A stretch of DNA of 64,000 nucleotides from Tubulanus polymorphus (Eukaryota > Animalia > Nemertea). Below are positions 31,001 to 46,081 of this stretch, one piece after another (the stretch's first letter is position 1; the number at the start of each line of letters is the position of its first letter). The position numbers and the translations under genes are program-made. Location of the stretch: assembly GCF_964204645.1 (NCBI RefSeq), contig NC_134031.1:1240001-1304000 (forward strand), in the 5' to 3' direction. The notes beneath the pieces were generated by a model. That model worked only from the letters and a program-made list of their open reading frames with translations, was not told the origin of the DNA and searched no databases.

Positions 31001-31565
31001 CAATAAGGTTTTAATTCTAACACAGGGGAATTCAATTGAATTGGGTTACCCACTAAGACTGAAGTAAATGGCTCGTGCAGTTTGGTATCTACAAAAACCA
31101 AGCTCTTGAGAACAATTTAACAGATTTTGTCATACCTTCAGTTTCATATTCGAGATCAATACCTGATCCGGGAGCAACAATTTCACCTTTGATTTTAGAT
31201 TGATTCTGACCTGAAAAACAAAATCAATCAGTTCATTCTAATGACTATTAAGGTGGGTAAATGTGCAATGAATGGTGTTTATACTGACTAGCTTCTTCAG
31301 CGCGTAATCCTAACTGTAAAACTTTAAATAGCCGATCAGACGGAGGACACGCCGGATGTGCATCAATCACGTTACTCAGATTCACAGCAACTTGTTGATG
31401 TCCGTCATAAAACAGTTGACTATAAATATACAACACAGTCACAACAGTTGAACCAGCAATCTATATAATCTATGCATTGATGAGGTGGGTGGGAGGGGGT
31501 GATACTGACCTGATTATCAGTCTATACATCTGTTCTCTATCTTTTACCTCTAATCGTCGAGACAT
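28083..31565 (-). CDS. CSTF1: Cleavage stimulation factor 50 kDa subunit (WD40; multi-exon)
   Basis: [25 protein letters not shown]; [14 protein letters not shown]; [14 protein letters not shown]; [11 protein letters not shown]; [15 protein letters not shown]; [20 protein letters not shown] (stop 28083-28085). Confidence 0.96.
28294..28671. mobile_element. Tc1/mariner-like MITE carrying a nested CAG-ended element (28381-28637)
   Basis: Outer TIRs and TA TSD as in the 13861 copy; inner CAGGGTCCGATCTAAG ... CTTAGATCGCACACTG inverted ends. Confidence 0.7.
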
Positions 31566-32179
31566 GATTTGATTTGATTTTTGCCTACATTAAAATAAAT
31601 AAATAAATTTTGAATTGAATTGATTGGTCCTTGCAGTCCCTCCTCGATTCTAATCGTGTTTATATCTCAATCACGCAACTGATAAATGATTAACAAGTTC
31701 TTATAGAAGTCCCAACAATTGAGTTTCCTCGAGATTAAAACCGTCCATCAACCCGTATTCAGCTCAGCAGAAAATAATTACCTCTTCCTAGTTTTCTACT
31801 AATACATGAAATTGCGGCCAGTGGCGGGTAACTCCGAGATCATGCAAATCAGGGCATCCATAGCGGGTAGCTCCGAAAATTCAATTCAAGCTTTATTGTT
31901 CCAATAAAATACAACACATCGGAACAAACATCATCAAAAAAAGTCAGGGTATCCAACTCCAATTTTATTGCCAACTTAGGTCACATCCTCGCTTGCTAGG
32001 GTTTAGGCAAGAAGTCACATATTGGATGGCCAGCGAGGGGTGGATCCACATGCAACAGATTGTCTTAGGATCAAAGGGTCCTTAACTGTCTCCAATCCTC
32101 ACCCAACAAAAACAACAAAATATTTAGAATATATCTTATTTTATTTTTCGCATAAAATTTAGGTACAAATTTACAATTG

Positions 32180-34613
32180 TCAACTGTTGGTGTCAGTTTT
32201 TGGAATTTGCTGCTCAATTATAGCTTTCAATGATTCAAATTCTTCGTCTCGAAGTGCTGTCCTTAAACTGTCGAAAAATGCGAAATAATGATGAAAATTG
32301 TGCCTACAAAATAACAAAGCAAAGTATTTTTAGATTTGGTTATCGGTAAAATCTTCAAAGTTTGAACTGATTATGTTCTGTAAGACTTACATCATTAGTA
32401 AAACTCCAGCTAACATTTCTGATGTATTTATGAGATGATGTATGTAAGATCTGGTGTGGGTTCGACAGGTATAGCAATCGCAATCAGAAACCAACGGTGA
32501 AAAATCTGCGAAATACCTACAATAGAATAATATACAACGTGTTAAATCAGGGCGCAGAAAGATTAAAGCGTCATATGAATATTCTTTAAATTTCTTCATC
32601 CCTCAATGAAGCACTTCTCAAGTCAGGAGACTAGAAAATGTGCTAGGATTGATGTAGAACTAATACTAACCGAGAGTCTTTAAGATCTATTTCAAATGGG
32701 TTTATTTGATGCGTTGAACTATCTCCATTCTCGATATCATCGTGTTGTGGTGTATTCGAAATGTTCTTATTCTTATAGTTATGATTGAACACCAGCGCAC
32801 CGCGTCGTTCTGTGACTACGTACGCGTATGAACTATCGAATATATCGACACCGCATTCAACAGCGTTCACGACCTGGTCCGGTCTCCAGATACCGTGCAT
32901 TACTCTCGGCTTCTCATCGGGTAAATATTTCTATAAAACAAATATCATTTTCATGAATTAAATCTGTGATAAACGGAGTCTACTGTAAAACACCAAGTAG
33001 AATTTGAACCTCAATAAATACTTATACTTACCATGAACTCGAGCATTAATTCTTTGACATCAGAAATTTGGAATGATTCACAATCGCCGCCGTAACTGTG
33101 AAAACCTTCTATTACAAAACCTACAGAAATAATTGAACAGAAATACCGTGAAATCACTGCCATTTCCAACAACGGAATATAACATAGATCAAAGGATAGG
33201 GATAGTAACATACCTGATACAGGTCTAGTAGCAGTCTGACGAGCCGATTGAATTCTAGCTTCAGTATCATATCCACCGACTATTACACCTAAAATTCCTA
33301 CACCATCGAGATTCTGAAAATACACACAAAATAAACATCAACATCAAACATGAAATACTTAAAGCAATGACTTAAAGCCACGGCCTGCAGTTGCTCAAAC
33401 GTTGGTTATGAGTGGATGGTTACAAGTCAGTTATTATAACCATGGAAATTATCTGCAGGTTAATTTTGACAGACTTTTGCACAGCCGTGCCCAGCAGTTG
33501 TATGAGATGTTTTCTCTTACCTCTGATTCTTGATGTTTTCTGAGACACATGTCTAAAAAGTTGATCGTTCGTTCGTGTGATTTCTGCAGACGTTTTCGTG
33601 AACTCGATTCGTTTACATCAGAATCGCTCAAACACTGGTAAAAATCTGGTTGAAAAATCTCCTGTACTTTAACATAATCTTCAGGTTCCAACTAGAAAAA
33701 CAAATAAACCAGTAAAATTACATTACAGCTTGGATAACACTGGTTCCATAGCAATATCAAGTTCCACATTAAGAATAAGAAACAAAAAGTCTGAAAATTT
33801 CCTCGAGCTAGTAGTTTATTCAACTGTATCCTTAAAGTCATCCTCAGGAACACTTATGGAATATTAAACTCAGACATAAGGATTCTTGAGACCTTTCCAA
33901 ACTCTTTTTTTCATTCTAAGTTAAGTGTTTCGGTTACAGCATGGATAGATGGGTATGACACAGGTTTCAGTGTTATTACACTTACCCTTACTCGACCACC
34001 TCTTCCCCAAATGCTGACACCATTTTTATCATTATATCCGGGAGCTACAACCGCTGTTGGGTCTTGTAATGAACAATACAATATCCTGTCCTGAAATACA
34101 TATACAATCATTGAATTACATATACAGAAAGAAAATAAACAATCTGATGAAGACACATTTCTTCAGTTCGATACTTACTTTCATACTAATAAATTTACCA
34201 ATTCCTCCACCATTTGCTTCGACTATTTCATTCTGATCTGCCCTAAAAACATGAATAGAGAATTTTCAAATGAATGAATCAACTACAAAACTGTTTATAA
34301 AGTTAGAAAATGATTTGAAACTTACAGTAAAGTCATCGGTAATTGTACAATCGCTGGAACTCTTTCTATTTTCTTCAACATGTCTAAAGTCAAATGAGGA
34401 GCGCTACCTGCCGTGGAAAATAACATCAATAAAACACATGCACTTTTTATGATACTAAATCTGTTCTGATTGTTATCAATGGGAATAATTCTGACCTCCT
34501 CTCGTGTATAATAAACACATCGGTGTCGCTACAACATTCTCCACATTCCGTTTAAATTCAGTCAGGTGACCGAGACGACAGCCATTCTTCACGGTTTGAA
34601 CGTTAAACTTCAT
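32180..34613 (-). CDS. QTRT2: Queuine tRNA-ribosyltransferase accessory subunit 2 (multi-exon)
   Basis: [15 protein letters not shown]...[14 protein letters not shown]; [13 protein letters not shown]; GVDIFDSSY; zinc site [17 protein letters not shown]...LLMMHNFHHYF; stop 32180-32182. Confidence 0.94.
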
Positions 34614-34798
34614 CTCTCGGAGCTCTCCCTCCCACCGGTCAGCAATCACTGATCAGTATTCAATCCTAAATAAACAAACAATAAATTAATGAAACAATAT
34701 TTACAGAATGCCAGATCGAGTTATGAAGTTAAGGAGGGTTATTATTATTACAGCGGGATTTGATGATTCGAAACTTCTTAATTCTTTTTTCGTAATTT

Positions 34799-36964
34799 CT
34801 ACTTGAATGAACTATTATTATCCAGAGGGCTGTCATTCATCAATTCACGTTTATTATTCCGAGCTTTGTTTTTATTATTCGATTTCCTTCGTTTGTTCGA
34901 ATGTCGACGTTTTTTATGTCGACCGTTCGCCGGTTTCTTTTTAGTTTTCGGACTCGAGCACTCGTCGATCGGGATGCACCTGTTTTTATGCAGCACCAGT
35001 CCGGGCAGACAGCGACAGCCGCCGATGCACGGGCGTTTACATTTACGTCGTTTAGCGCCGTGATTAGCGCAGGTCTCCGGACACGCCGAGACGCACGTGT
35101 CGTAAACCGCACCGATCTGACATTTCGGAGCGCCGCATAAATACGGCGTCCTCCAATTCAGAAACGTGTTCAGTTCCTTTTCGCACAAACGCGAATAAGC
35201 GACCATCGCCTCGCACGAACACTGCTGATTCTCCGGACAATCAGTGACGTCCATTACGCAAGCTTTATAATACGCGCGTACGTCGATTTTCTGTCGACAT
35301 CGAGCGAAACTATTTCCGTAAAGCGCCGCGCATTCCTGATGAGCTAACAATCGCTGATTCGGGTTAATCACGCGTATAACGTTACGTTTCGGACCGCGAC
35401 AATTCCGGTCCTTACCGACCAGCCACGTATCGCCGAAATCCTCCTCGGCGAAATATATCTGACCGTCGCTACCGGTTAAATCATCGGCTTCGATACCGTT
35501 ATAATTACCGCACAATCCGCAGAGTTTCTTCTTCAATAACGCCGGCACGCTCACCTCCAGGTAGCTGTCGCCGTCCCAGATTATTTTGATACCGATTTTA
35601 GTGGTAACCACGACGGCCTGACCGTCGCGACGAATATCGAATAATCGTTTGTTGACAAACGGCAACGCGATGCGTCTCCCGTCAACTTTCACTTTCAACA
35701 TCTGATCCAATAGAATTTGAGAACCGTTTATTTTAACGAGAGCGTTTTTCGTCCACGAGTAAAGATTCGACGATCGGATTCTATTCGAGACGATCACGTG
35801 AAACGAGTCGTCCTCACACAGTTTCGTTAACGTATAACGACATTTACCCTGGAAATCGTACAACTTTCCGTCGTATGTTTTATAGTGCGGGTCGCCGAAT
35901 ACGGTACACGTCGCGTCCATCTCGACGCACACCGGGCAGCATTCTCCGCGCACGTTCTGCAGTCGGAAATTCTTCGGACAATCGAGGTTATTATCGCAGC
36001 TTTGTCTCGTACATTCGATCGCTCCGTTGTTACATTCGCAATTATTGCAGACGGATTTCAACCATTTGACTCCGTGAGCGTAGGTATTCCCGTCCGACGC
36101 CGAACATGTTTTCTTCTCTCGACATTTACGACAACAAGCTCCGGTCGAGGGCAGGATTTCCTCGTCGGGGCAGTCTAAAATCGGGCAGGTATCGACTCGA
36201 CAGACGATCGTACCCGCGCGACATTCGCACGTCGTGCATCGGTCCGGTTTGAAGCTTAATCCCGATCGATAAACGTGAGTTTGGTATAAACAGAATCCGG
36301 TGAGTTTAAAAACGCTGCGCGATCCGGTGCAATGAGGACAGCAATCGCCGGCTGACAGCTTCCAGAACTGACGCTGACAGTTTAAAACCGGGCAACCGAT
36401 TTTACCGCATTCCCTCGTACCGTTCGTACATCGACACGTTACGCATTTATCACGACTCGCCGGGAAATAGTCCCCGTCGCGATACGTGAAACCGTCGTCG
36501 CTTTCGCAACCGCTACAAACCGGACAACACGTACCCGGACTCGAAACTGGATTCTTGCATTTGGCGTAACACTTCTTCACGCTGGATGTTACAACTCCGG
36601 CGAGACAGGTGTACGTTCGACACGGATCATCAGGATCGGTCCATTCTTCATCGTTTACGTAATCTCGACCTTTATACGTACAACCCTTACACGGACTACA
36701 GCAAACTCCGGCAGGTTTCGGATAAACAACTTGATGACATCCTTCTAAACTCGGACACTTCTTATCGTAACAGGAGATCTCACCCTCGCGACAATAACAC
36801 ACCGTACAGACCGAACGAATAACACCAGCTGGTGCTGCCACCTGCATACCTTCATTCGAACACGATATTGAATTACTGGTATTATTAAACCCGACGACTG
36901 ATTGTGATCCATCGACGACTAGAAACACTGCGTACAACATTACAATAACTTTAACGATAGACAT
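34799..36964 (-). CDS. BMPER: BMP-binding endothelial regulator / crossveinless-2, single coding exon
   Basis: Signal peptide from ATG 36964 (MSIVKVIVML), five VWC repeats, VWD with CTVFGDPHY autocleavage site and LCGLCGNYNG, C8 and TIL domains, basic tail. The ORF is uninterrupted. Confidence 0.93.
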   Translation of the reverse strand: MSIVKVIVMLYAVFLVVDGSQSVVGFNNTSNSISCSNEGMQVAAPAGVIRSVCTVCYCREGEISCYDKKCPSLEGCHQVVYPKPAGVCCSPCKGCTYKGRDYVNDEEWTDPDDPCRTYTCLAGVVTSSVKKCYAKCKNPVSSPGTCCPVCSGCESDDGFTYRDGDYFPASRDKCVTCRCTNGTRECGKIGCPVLNCQRQFWKLSAGDCCPHCTGSRSVFKLTGFCLYQTHVYRSGLSFKPDRCTTCECRAGTIVCRVDTCPILDCPDEEILPSTGACCRKCREKKTCSASDGNTYAHGVKWLKSVCNNCECNNGAIECTRQSCDNNLDCPKNFRLQNVRGECCPVCVEMDATCTVFGDPHYKTYDGKLYDFQGKCRYTLTKLCEDDSFHVIVSNRIRSSNLYSWTKNALVKINGSQILLDQMLKVKVDGRRIALPFVNKRLFDIRRDGQAVVVTTKIGIKIIWDGDSYLEVSVPALLKKKLCGLCGNYNGIEADDLTGSDGQIYFAEEDFGDTWLVGKDRNCRGPKRNVIRVINPNQRLLAHQECAALYGNSFARCRQKIDVRAYYKACVMDVTDCPENQQCSCEAMVAYSRLCEKELNTFLNWRTPYLCGAPKCQIGAVYDTCVSACPETCANHGAKRRKCKRPCIGGCRCLPGLVLHKNRCIPIDECSSPKTKKKPANGRHKKRRHSNKRRKSNNKNKARNNKRELMNDSPLDNNSSFK

Positions 36965-37800
36965 TTTCACAAATTTCGAGTGCTCTGACTGTATAGCTGT
37001 ATTACACTGAAATGTTTGATCTCTACAAACAGCTATATTGTTATATATATACCTAGAATCCTGTGTGTGTGTGTGACATGATGAGATGATTGACACAGCA
37101 ATTGACTTGATAGATGATTAATTATCACTTGTCTTGTTAATTGGCTTAATTAGCCTGACTGATCAGATATCACCTCTCACTAATTATCTATCAAAATTAA
37201 TAAGTGACATCAATCAATGCCTAACAGCAGCAGGACGGTCCCCCACACAACAGACTGAGAGACGGTCACAACAGACATCAACAAGTAACAGACAGACACA
37301 CGGACACTGACAGACAGATACTAGACCACAACAGATCAACGACTTCTCAATTTCTCAAATCAAAGCTTCACAACCTTCAAATCTCATCACATTATCTCTT
37401 GAAATGGGACCAGGATGTTACTGAATAACGTTCAAATCATGTCAATTACTAAAATATTGAATTAGAAGGCATGAAAATCATAATTACCGTCGAAACAAAA
37501 TTTCTAGTTCTGGATCGCGCAACGACCTTGAGAAAATGCCGGTAACTTGTGCGTTGAATAAAAAGTTAATTGTATTGAATTGTCTCTTCGATACCTAATT
37601 GAAGTTCAAGCTGAAGGTATGTGGAGGCACTTTGGGGAGTAGTGATTAAATCCCAAATAGCAAAAGTCTATTTTCCCTACGTAAGCCTTCAATATTCATT
37701 ATCGAGTAGCGGCTGAAATCTGCTCCTCCCGACTGTCGTTTAATTCTCTACCCCTTAAAAAAGTCAATGTCCATGAGAAACTTAAATCTCTCTTGTAAAA

Positions 37801-38061: not shown

Positions 38062-38213
38062 TTATTTAAGTGGTCAAATCCACAGCGGCTCGTATCAGAG
38101 TTGTAGTAGGTAATGTAAAAACGGTAATCTGTTAATCCTATGTCTATAGGGGCCTAGTTATTTTATATATACTATAGACATAGGATTAACAGTTTATCTG
38201 TGGTCAAATCCAT

Positions 38214-38418
38214 GGTAAAAGTGCAGATCCGCGTAAATAAATAAACGGTTCAATCAGTTACATTAAATATCATTGTTTCAGATTCAAAATGTCATCAGCA
38301 ATTTCATGCCATTGGTTAATTTTAAGATATCTTCACTAGAAAGATTTTAGCCTGGATTCTGTCATTCAGTAGGCCTAGATTGCGTCAATCACGAGAGGTG
38401 CGGATCTGCACTTTTACC
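38214..38418. mobile_element. MITE with 19-bp TIR and 8-bp TSD (possibly Merlin-type)
   Basis: AAATCCAT|GGTAAAAGTGCAGATCCGC ... GCGGATCTGCACTTTTACC|AAATCCAT. Confidence 0.85.
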
Positions 38419-38851
38419 AAATCCATTATGATAAACTGAAAAGTTATCAAGAAATACCGGCTTAGGGCCTACAGGGATTTTTGCTTTTATTTGATGACTA
38501 TTAATCAAAGTTTCATTTTCTTCCCCCCTGTTTTATACGGGCGCTCCAAAAATACTGAATGAATGAAATATCCGTTGTAGCACATTTTCCCAACCGTTGA
38601 AAATGTTTCATTTCGACCTCAAGGATTCTCTGGACCTGTTGATTATAAGAGTTTACTAAGAAAATGTGGTCGCATTTTATTTTCCAGAGTTCAAAGCGAA
38701 AAAATTGCTCGAGTACAAAAAACGCGAAGAAGAGGCTAAACTTCGAATTCAACGGGAAAAGGAACGAAGGGAGGCGGAAATAGCGGCTCAAAAATCCGGA
38801 CTTACTCTACAAAAAAAACAATAAACACTGGCTGAAAATACGGACTGAAAC

Positions 38852-46081
<7,230 letters not shown>

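Follow-up and report, generated by a model that had tools for sequence, protein, structure and literature searches.

Does the intronless BMPER/crossveinless-2 (CV-2) gene of the palaeonemertean ribbon worm Tubulanus polymorphus share a transcription unit with QTRT2, the gene for a tRNA-queuosine enzyme that follows it on the same strand, or is each of the two genes transcribed from a promoter of its own? The locus lies in a 64,000-nucleotide (nt) stretch of contig NC_134031.1 (assembly GCF_964204645.1, positions 1,240,001 to 1,304,000), referred to below as the window, whose own positions are used throughout; the chromosome carrying it is called C7. On the minus strand of the window, the BMPER open reading frame (ORF; protein P0001) occupies 34799-36964 and runs from an ATG at 36964 to a TAG at 34801-34799 as 721 uninterrupted codons, in agreement with the intronless coding sequence of that length that had been read from the sequence before, and its stop lies 186 bases upstream of the start codon of QTRT2. 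The original prediction took BMPER for a retro-copy and proposed that the two genes are transcribed together, with a first exon in common or as a dicistronic or trans-spliced message. Our bioinformatics analyses support the first of these proposals well, whereas for the second they favor, with a probability of about one half, BMPER and QTRT2 having separate promoters in a tight and possibly overlapping tandem, without a shared first exon. All transcript starts, ends, and splices given for BMPER-QTRT2 are predictions.

On domain content and phylogeny, the window ORF is a complete BMPER/CV-2. Pfam finds five VWC stretches (E 1e-29), a VWD domain (E 1.7e-36), C8, and TIL, all as in known BMPER/CV-2 proteins, and its VWD domain carries the GDPH autocleavage motif of the known proteins, readable in the translation as FGDPHYKTYDG. 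The translated N terminus is hydrophobic and resembles a signal peptide. The nearest named relatives are mollusc, annelid, and brachiopod BMPER proteins, with 43-48% identity, and in the phylogenetic tree the protein falls within a spiralian BMPER clade to which KCP (kielin/chordin-like protein) is the outgroup. Unlike known BMPER/CV-2 genes, the window copy lacks introns, is one of three lineage-specific paralogues, and encodes an extra C-terminal tail of 51 residues (34802-34954, minus strand), which is basic, rich in K, R, and N, and without counterpart in other BMPERs. The DNA encoding this tail contains 46% A, versus 25% in the remainder of the coding sequence, and includes two AATAAA hexamers (34876-34871 and 34855-34850). 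The tail may be a former 3'-untranslated region (UTR) or poly(A) remnant that was absorbed into the ORF. There is also an A-rich run 3' of the stop codon, although, given the age of the copy, reading either stretch as a poly(A) remnant is not firm.

The origin of this gene can be traced through its relatives. A six-frame search of the T. polymorphus genome (G000) for an intron-containing BMPER paralogue returned two multi-exon genes, both with ~50% identity to the window copy, one on C1 (4.698-4.704 Mb; at least nine exons, full domain set) and the other on C4 (24.811-24.815 Mb), each exon of the latter matching P0088, the protein that NCBI lists as "BMPER-like [Tubulanus polymorphus]", with 100% identity. 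Two maximum-likelihood trees unite the three T. polymorphus copies in one clade with the topology C1,(C7 intronless, C4), with support values of 96/93 and 96/95 in the SH-like approximate likelihood ratio test (SH-aLRT). The BMPER gene of the annelid Owenia spans 16 kb and has at least 10 exons, with introns at residues ~121, 153, 181, 250, 295, 566, and 612 on the numbering of P0001; these seven positions recur in the C1 paralogue, and the last three of them (295, 566, and 612) in the C4 paralogue as well. In total, at least eight intron positions are common to Owenia and C1, three of them also to C4, and none of them is present in the window copy. Because an intronless copy nests among intron-bearing paralogues located on different chromosomes, it is well supported that the window BMPER is a processed (retro) copy, and the original prediction is borne out on this point by the C1 and C4 paralogues, by the nesting in the tree, and by the absence of the eight or more introns. 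An end branch of ~0.75 changes per site since the duplication shows that the retroposition is old, and the intact 721-codon frame shows that selection has kept the copy. The arrangement with QTRT2 is not conserved in Owenia, whose BMPER has no TGT gene up to 10 kb away, and no nemertean orthologue of the intronless BMPER was found among the matches listed. A 610-residue BMPER from ENA assembly ERZ25072999 (P0017, on a 613-kb contig), which groups with that of the annelid Ridgeia in the tree, is encoded by one uninterrupted ORF of 1,833 nt and is a second, independent intronless BMPER. As a separate observation, at least 14 genes with VWC and VWD units, ~32% identical to BMPER, are arranged in tandem arrays on C4 of the T. 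polymorphus genome (19.93-20.93 Mb and 8.72-8.74 Mb).

The QTRT2 model was placed by hand and assessed exon by exon, and its reading frame is consistent. Translation would start at an ATG at 34613, and the N-terminal 40 residues match positions 1-40 of human QTRT2 (PDB 7nq4_B, E 9e-6); the start being the conserved one, the model requires no coding exon further upstream. The first coding exon (34496-34613, minus strand, as are all exons of the gene) ends at the donor GAG|GTCAGA at 34495 and is followed by exon 2 (34326-34383; acceptor AG at 34385-34384, donor GTAAGT at 34325), exon 3 (34179-34242; acceptor AG at 34244-34243), and a next exon placed by hand from 34090. The TGT family (PF01702) is recognized on the exon at 33452-33691, a CxCxxC...H motif lies in the ORF at 32387-32599, and the last exon (32180-32303) ends in a TGA at 32182-32180, beyond which the poly(A) region shows AATAAA at 32145-32140 and then a T/G-rich downstream element at ~32118-32100. 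The exon tested against the genome has a single match, the window's own, and QTRT2 is by this search a single-copy gene.

In the reading with separate promoters, an ancient BMPER retrogene, intact by sequence, would have inserted on C7 directly upstream of QTRT2 and in the same orientation. BMPER would most likely have its own regulated promoter, consisting of a TATA box (TATATATATAA, 37051-37041) and an initiator-like TCA (37019-37017), the latter 30 nt downstream of the TATATAA core. This pair, read from the minus strand, lies 53-87 nt upstream of the BMPER ATG, and the 53-nt leader that it predicts is free of ATG. There are 13 TATA and initiator-like pairs on this strand in the 64 kb, corresponding to a chance of ~3% per 150-nt interval. 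Potential splice acceptors were defined by at least 14 pyrimidines in 18 positions, a YAG, and no upstream AG, and no such site is present upstream of the BMPER ATG; the combination of the TATA/initiator pair with the lack of a strong acceptor before the ATG argues against BMPER borrowing an exon from QTRT2. As a side observation, a GT-rich low-complexity stretch of TCTG/TGTC repeats occupies 37220-37340 on the minus strand, between the BMPER TATA box and the site of a putative upstream exon discussed below, with a CpG observed/expected ratio of 0.3.

At the other end of the gene, the BMPER message would most likely end in or just beyond the 131-nt spacer (34668-34798, minus strand) that separates its stop from an acceptor-like AG. 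The spacer has 11% G and contains AATAAT twice (34749-34741), TGTAAATATT (34705-34696), and two UGUA motifs. The lack of AATAAA and ATTAAA in this gap, pointed out in the original prediction, is confirmed and yet expected by chance: at the observed frequency of one AWTAAA in ~530 nt of either strand, ~78% of all 131-nt gaps would be free of it, which makes its absence uninformative. The BMPER poly(A) signal would probably be non-canonical, AAUAAU or UGUAAAUAUU, aided by the T/G tract at 34685-34668, which is similar to the T/G-rich element following the AATAAA of QTRT2. It is of note that AWTAAA is likewise missing from the 400 nt after the stop of the C4 paralogue, and that the 9-mer GTAAATATT is found ~105 nt after that stop and ~95 nt after the stop of the window BMPER. 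QTRT2, for its part, would most likely start downstream of the BMPER start codon, either in the spacer region near an initiator-like TCAGTG (34652-34647), which lies 37 nt before its ATG within a 52-nt leader free of upstream ATG (34614-34665, minus strand), or at a short non-coding exon that overlaps the 3' end of BMPER and is spliced to 34667. Such a layout is comparable with the tandem overlapping genes of compact animal genomes, with which it shares the short stop-to-ATG distance, a T/G element that follows non-canonical candidates for a poly(A) signal, and an initiator-like motif before the downstream ATG; unlike in those genes, the poly(A) and start sites of BMPER-QTRT2 are predicted ones.

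Several observations weigh against separate promoters. A QTRT2 promoter confined to less than 130 nt after the BMPER stop would be tight, and the minus strand carries no canonical poly(A) signal for 980 nt after BMPER, with neither AATAAA nor ATTAAA between 34850 and 33820. The acceptor-like AG at 34667-34666, 131 nt past the BMPER stop and 52 nt before the QTRT2 ATG, ends a T/G-rich tract (34685-34666, minus strand, ending TAG|G) that has three possible readings: a candidate 3' splice site, a downstream element of BMPER polyadenylation, or an AT-rich core-promoter element. The original prediction had named it as a strong acceptor ~130 bp below the BMPER stop, and the site is indeed present and better than chance. 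With one site of this quality in ~1,500 nt of either strand, ~0.12 would be expected in the 186-nt interval; the zone free of AG before 34667 measures 108 nt, and a length of at least 100 nt is seen in only 0.7% of the intervals between AGs; and QTRT2 contains four further sites of this kind (34385, 34244, 33693, and 32305), all of them acceptors that fit the frame and the homology. Finally, two upstream regions, the 200 nt before a donor-like site at 37487 and the 180 nt before the ATG exon of CSTF1, the next gene, have in common three collinear exact blocks (AGCTTGAA, AGTTACC, and GGTAATTAT) at similar spacing, with p ~0.005 in a chain test (~0.5% of random segment pairs match as well), although the comparison was post hoc. 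On the other hand, only about one-third of the acceptor sites of the same quality appear exon-linked across the window by a crude test, and we consider it roughly an even bet that the acceptor at 34667 is real; even a real acceptor there could pair with a donor that is not upstream of BMPER.

The alternative that these observations would suit best, which we regard as possible but rather unlikely, places a non-coding QTRT2 exon upstream of BMPER, ending for example at 37488, so that a 5'-UTR intron of ~2.8 kb (37487-34666) would hold BMPER, transcribed from its own intronic TATA promoter and with a poly(A) signal weak enough to let the host transcript through. The quality of the 34667 acceptor, the reality of the comparable sites in QTRT2, and the long AG-free zone would all be in keeping with such an intron, and selection on the host would disfavor a canonical poly(A) signal downstream of a gene lying in its intron in sense orientation, which would fit the absence of one here. 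The same genome offers a precedent in PTAR1, taken as a retrogene inside the first intron of the housekeeping gene MRPS18B, but the ATG of PTAR1 has a strong acceptor 40 nt upstream, and that of BMPER a TATA promoter instead. The donor side is less favorable. Both donor-like sites of the original prediction, a good one at 37487 and a weaker one at 34751, are present, but the former is at chance level and the latter is poor: ACG|GTAATT at 37487 (ACG|GTAATTAT, 37482-37490, minus strand), the putative exon-1 donor, agrees with the consensus at five of seven positions, such sites occur once per ~480 nt, and three of them, this one included, lie in the 1.75-kb intergenic region upstream of BMPER, whereas CT|GTAATA at 34751 (34746-34753, minus strand) agrees at two of seven positions, below a typical GT. 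The sequence flanking the 37487 donor is unique in the genome, and its 9-mer, GGTAATTAT, also occurs within the BMPER coding sequence. There is no independent sign of a promoter or exon at 37488-37600, the other early introns of QTRT2 measure 80-110 nt, and the T/G tract reads equally well as a poly(A) downstream element. The resemblance to CSTF1 concerns a gene whose ATG exon (31563-31610, minus strand; ATG 31565-31563) is preceded by a T-rich tract with TAG|G 19 nt before the ATG and by a donor-like GGTAATTAT at 31782, ~197 nt upstream. This layout is the one that the original prediction proposed for QTRT2 and may point to a 5'-UTR-intron architecture common in this genome, and the donor-like site at 37487 with its collinear motifs resembles it; nevertheless, besides being post hoc, the similarity is without support from local alignment, since that of 37440-37660 against the region upstream of CSTF1 was not significant, and it lends the upstream exon weak support. 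As a general promoter signature, the combined motif was rejected because its only four other matches in the genome (a coding exon, a minisatellite, and two uncharacterized sites) are not promoter-like.

A different way of coupling the two genes would be co-transcription from the BMPER promoter, with read-through past a weak BMPER 3' end into QTRT2, followed either by cis-splicing that joins a donor within BMPER, in its 5' leader or its 3' part, to 34667 or by spliced-leader (SL) trans-splicing at 34667; we consider this improbable. With ~131 nt from stop to acceptor and a further 52 nt to the ATG, the spacing is operon-like, BMPER has no canonical poly(A) signal downstream, and CSTF1 too has an acceptor-like site just before its ATG. 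In these respects, in strand, stop-to-acceptor distance, and closeness of the acceptor to the downstream ATG, the pair is like the SL operons of nematodes, tunicates, chaetognaths, and flatworms; unlike them, it comes with no SL RNA gene in a cursory test of 5S ribosomal DNA (rDNA) spacers. SL RNA genes sit in 5S rDNA arrays in some phyla, and the T. polymorphus genome has two such arrays (C11, 7.72-7.88 Mb, and C3, 19.00-19.03 Mb; L013-L018), whose units measure 555 and 627 nt. Rfam has no match to the spacers, which do share a conserved block composed of a 30-nt element, TGACGTCA, and CCAAT, with AAA|GTA and the Sm-like AAATTTTGA on the opposite strand. The sole Sm-like candidate for an SL RNA gene in these spacers (CRE, CCAAT box, and downstream Sm-like site) was rejected, because the would-be leader varies within and between the arrays, Rfam has no match to it, and all listed copies are inside an array, none being dispersed. 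A search of the available literature found no report of SL trans-splicing in Nemertea. Moreover, under scanning initiation a long upstream ORF blocks downstream translation, so the 721 codons of BMPER would keep QTRT2 from being translated on an unprocessed dicistronic RNA, and a tissue-restricted TATA promoter would be unlikely to be the only driver of a housekeeping gene. The extended version, in which BMPER, QTRT2, and perhaps CSTF1 form one polycistronic precursor with SL trans-splicing at the acceptors 52 nt upstream of the ATG of QTRT2 and 19 nt upstream of that of CSTF1, appears very improbable, and would, if true, be without precedent in Nemertea, both as an operon and as an SL system. 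The question of coupling would not arise at all if the BMPER ORF were an unexpressed relic, a processed pseudogene still open by chance, as its lack of introns would allow. No transcript-derived copy of this BMPER or of a C-terminal fragment was found in the protein collection, a weak argument given that the collection may lack T. polymorphus records. However, neutral sequence would have lost the frame long ago, whereas here 721 codons, all domains, and GDPH are intact despite ~0.75 changes per site and ~50% divergence from the paralogues, and a TATA/initiator pair is in place, so that we find a relic hardly credible.

The genes around the locus differ in structure. The original prediction described most neighbors of BMPER as intron-rich, which holds for QTRT2 and CSTF1 but not for an F-box/LRR gene at 38852-39883 on the plus strand, divergent to BMPER, which is a single ORF of 343 codons and may be another intronless gene. 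Two small elements with inverted repeats, resembling miniature inverted-repeat transposable elements, lie in the region between BMPER and the F-box gene (38213-38421 and 38081-38198), the first of which has at least 40 copies in the genome at 84-94% identity, and in each unit of a tandem repeat of ~43 bp at 40278-40420, AATAAA and an acceptor-like site lie on opposite strands. The CpG observed/expected ratio is ~1.9 in both BMPER and the F-box gene; window-wide, coding exons, including those of QTRT2, CSTF1, and BMPER, reach 1.3-2.2, versus 0.5-1.0 in introns and intergenic DNA (L010, L011). Coding sequence in T. polymorphus is thus markedly CpG-rich, and CpG content was dropped as a proxy for germline transcription because, with all coding exons CpG-rich, it is uninformative on transcription units.

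Old retrogenes beside or inside housekeeping genes are an already known phenomenon, and the T. polymorphus BMPER resembles them in being intronless, in sense orientation, and directly 5' of the ATG exon of a housekeeping gene, with multi-exon family members elsewhere in the genome. Unlike nested retrogenes, it lies upstream of the first coding exon of its would-be host, so that nesting depends on a putative non-coding exon. If BMPER and QTRT2 have separate promoters, the gene would be an ordinary old retrogene, the third BMPER paralogue of the ribbon worm, and an example of how closely neighboring genes can be packed in this 268-Mb genome. If, on the other hand, QTRT2 starts upstream of BMPER, the choice between splicing and polyadenylation would decide whether a developmental signaling protein or a housekeeping enzyme is made.

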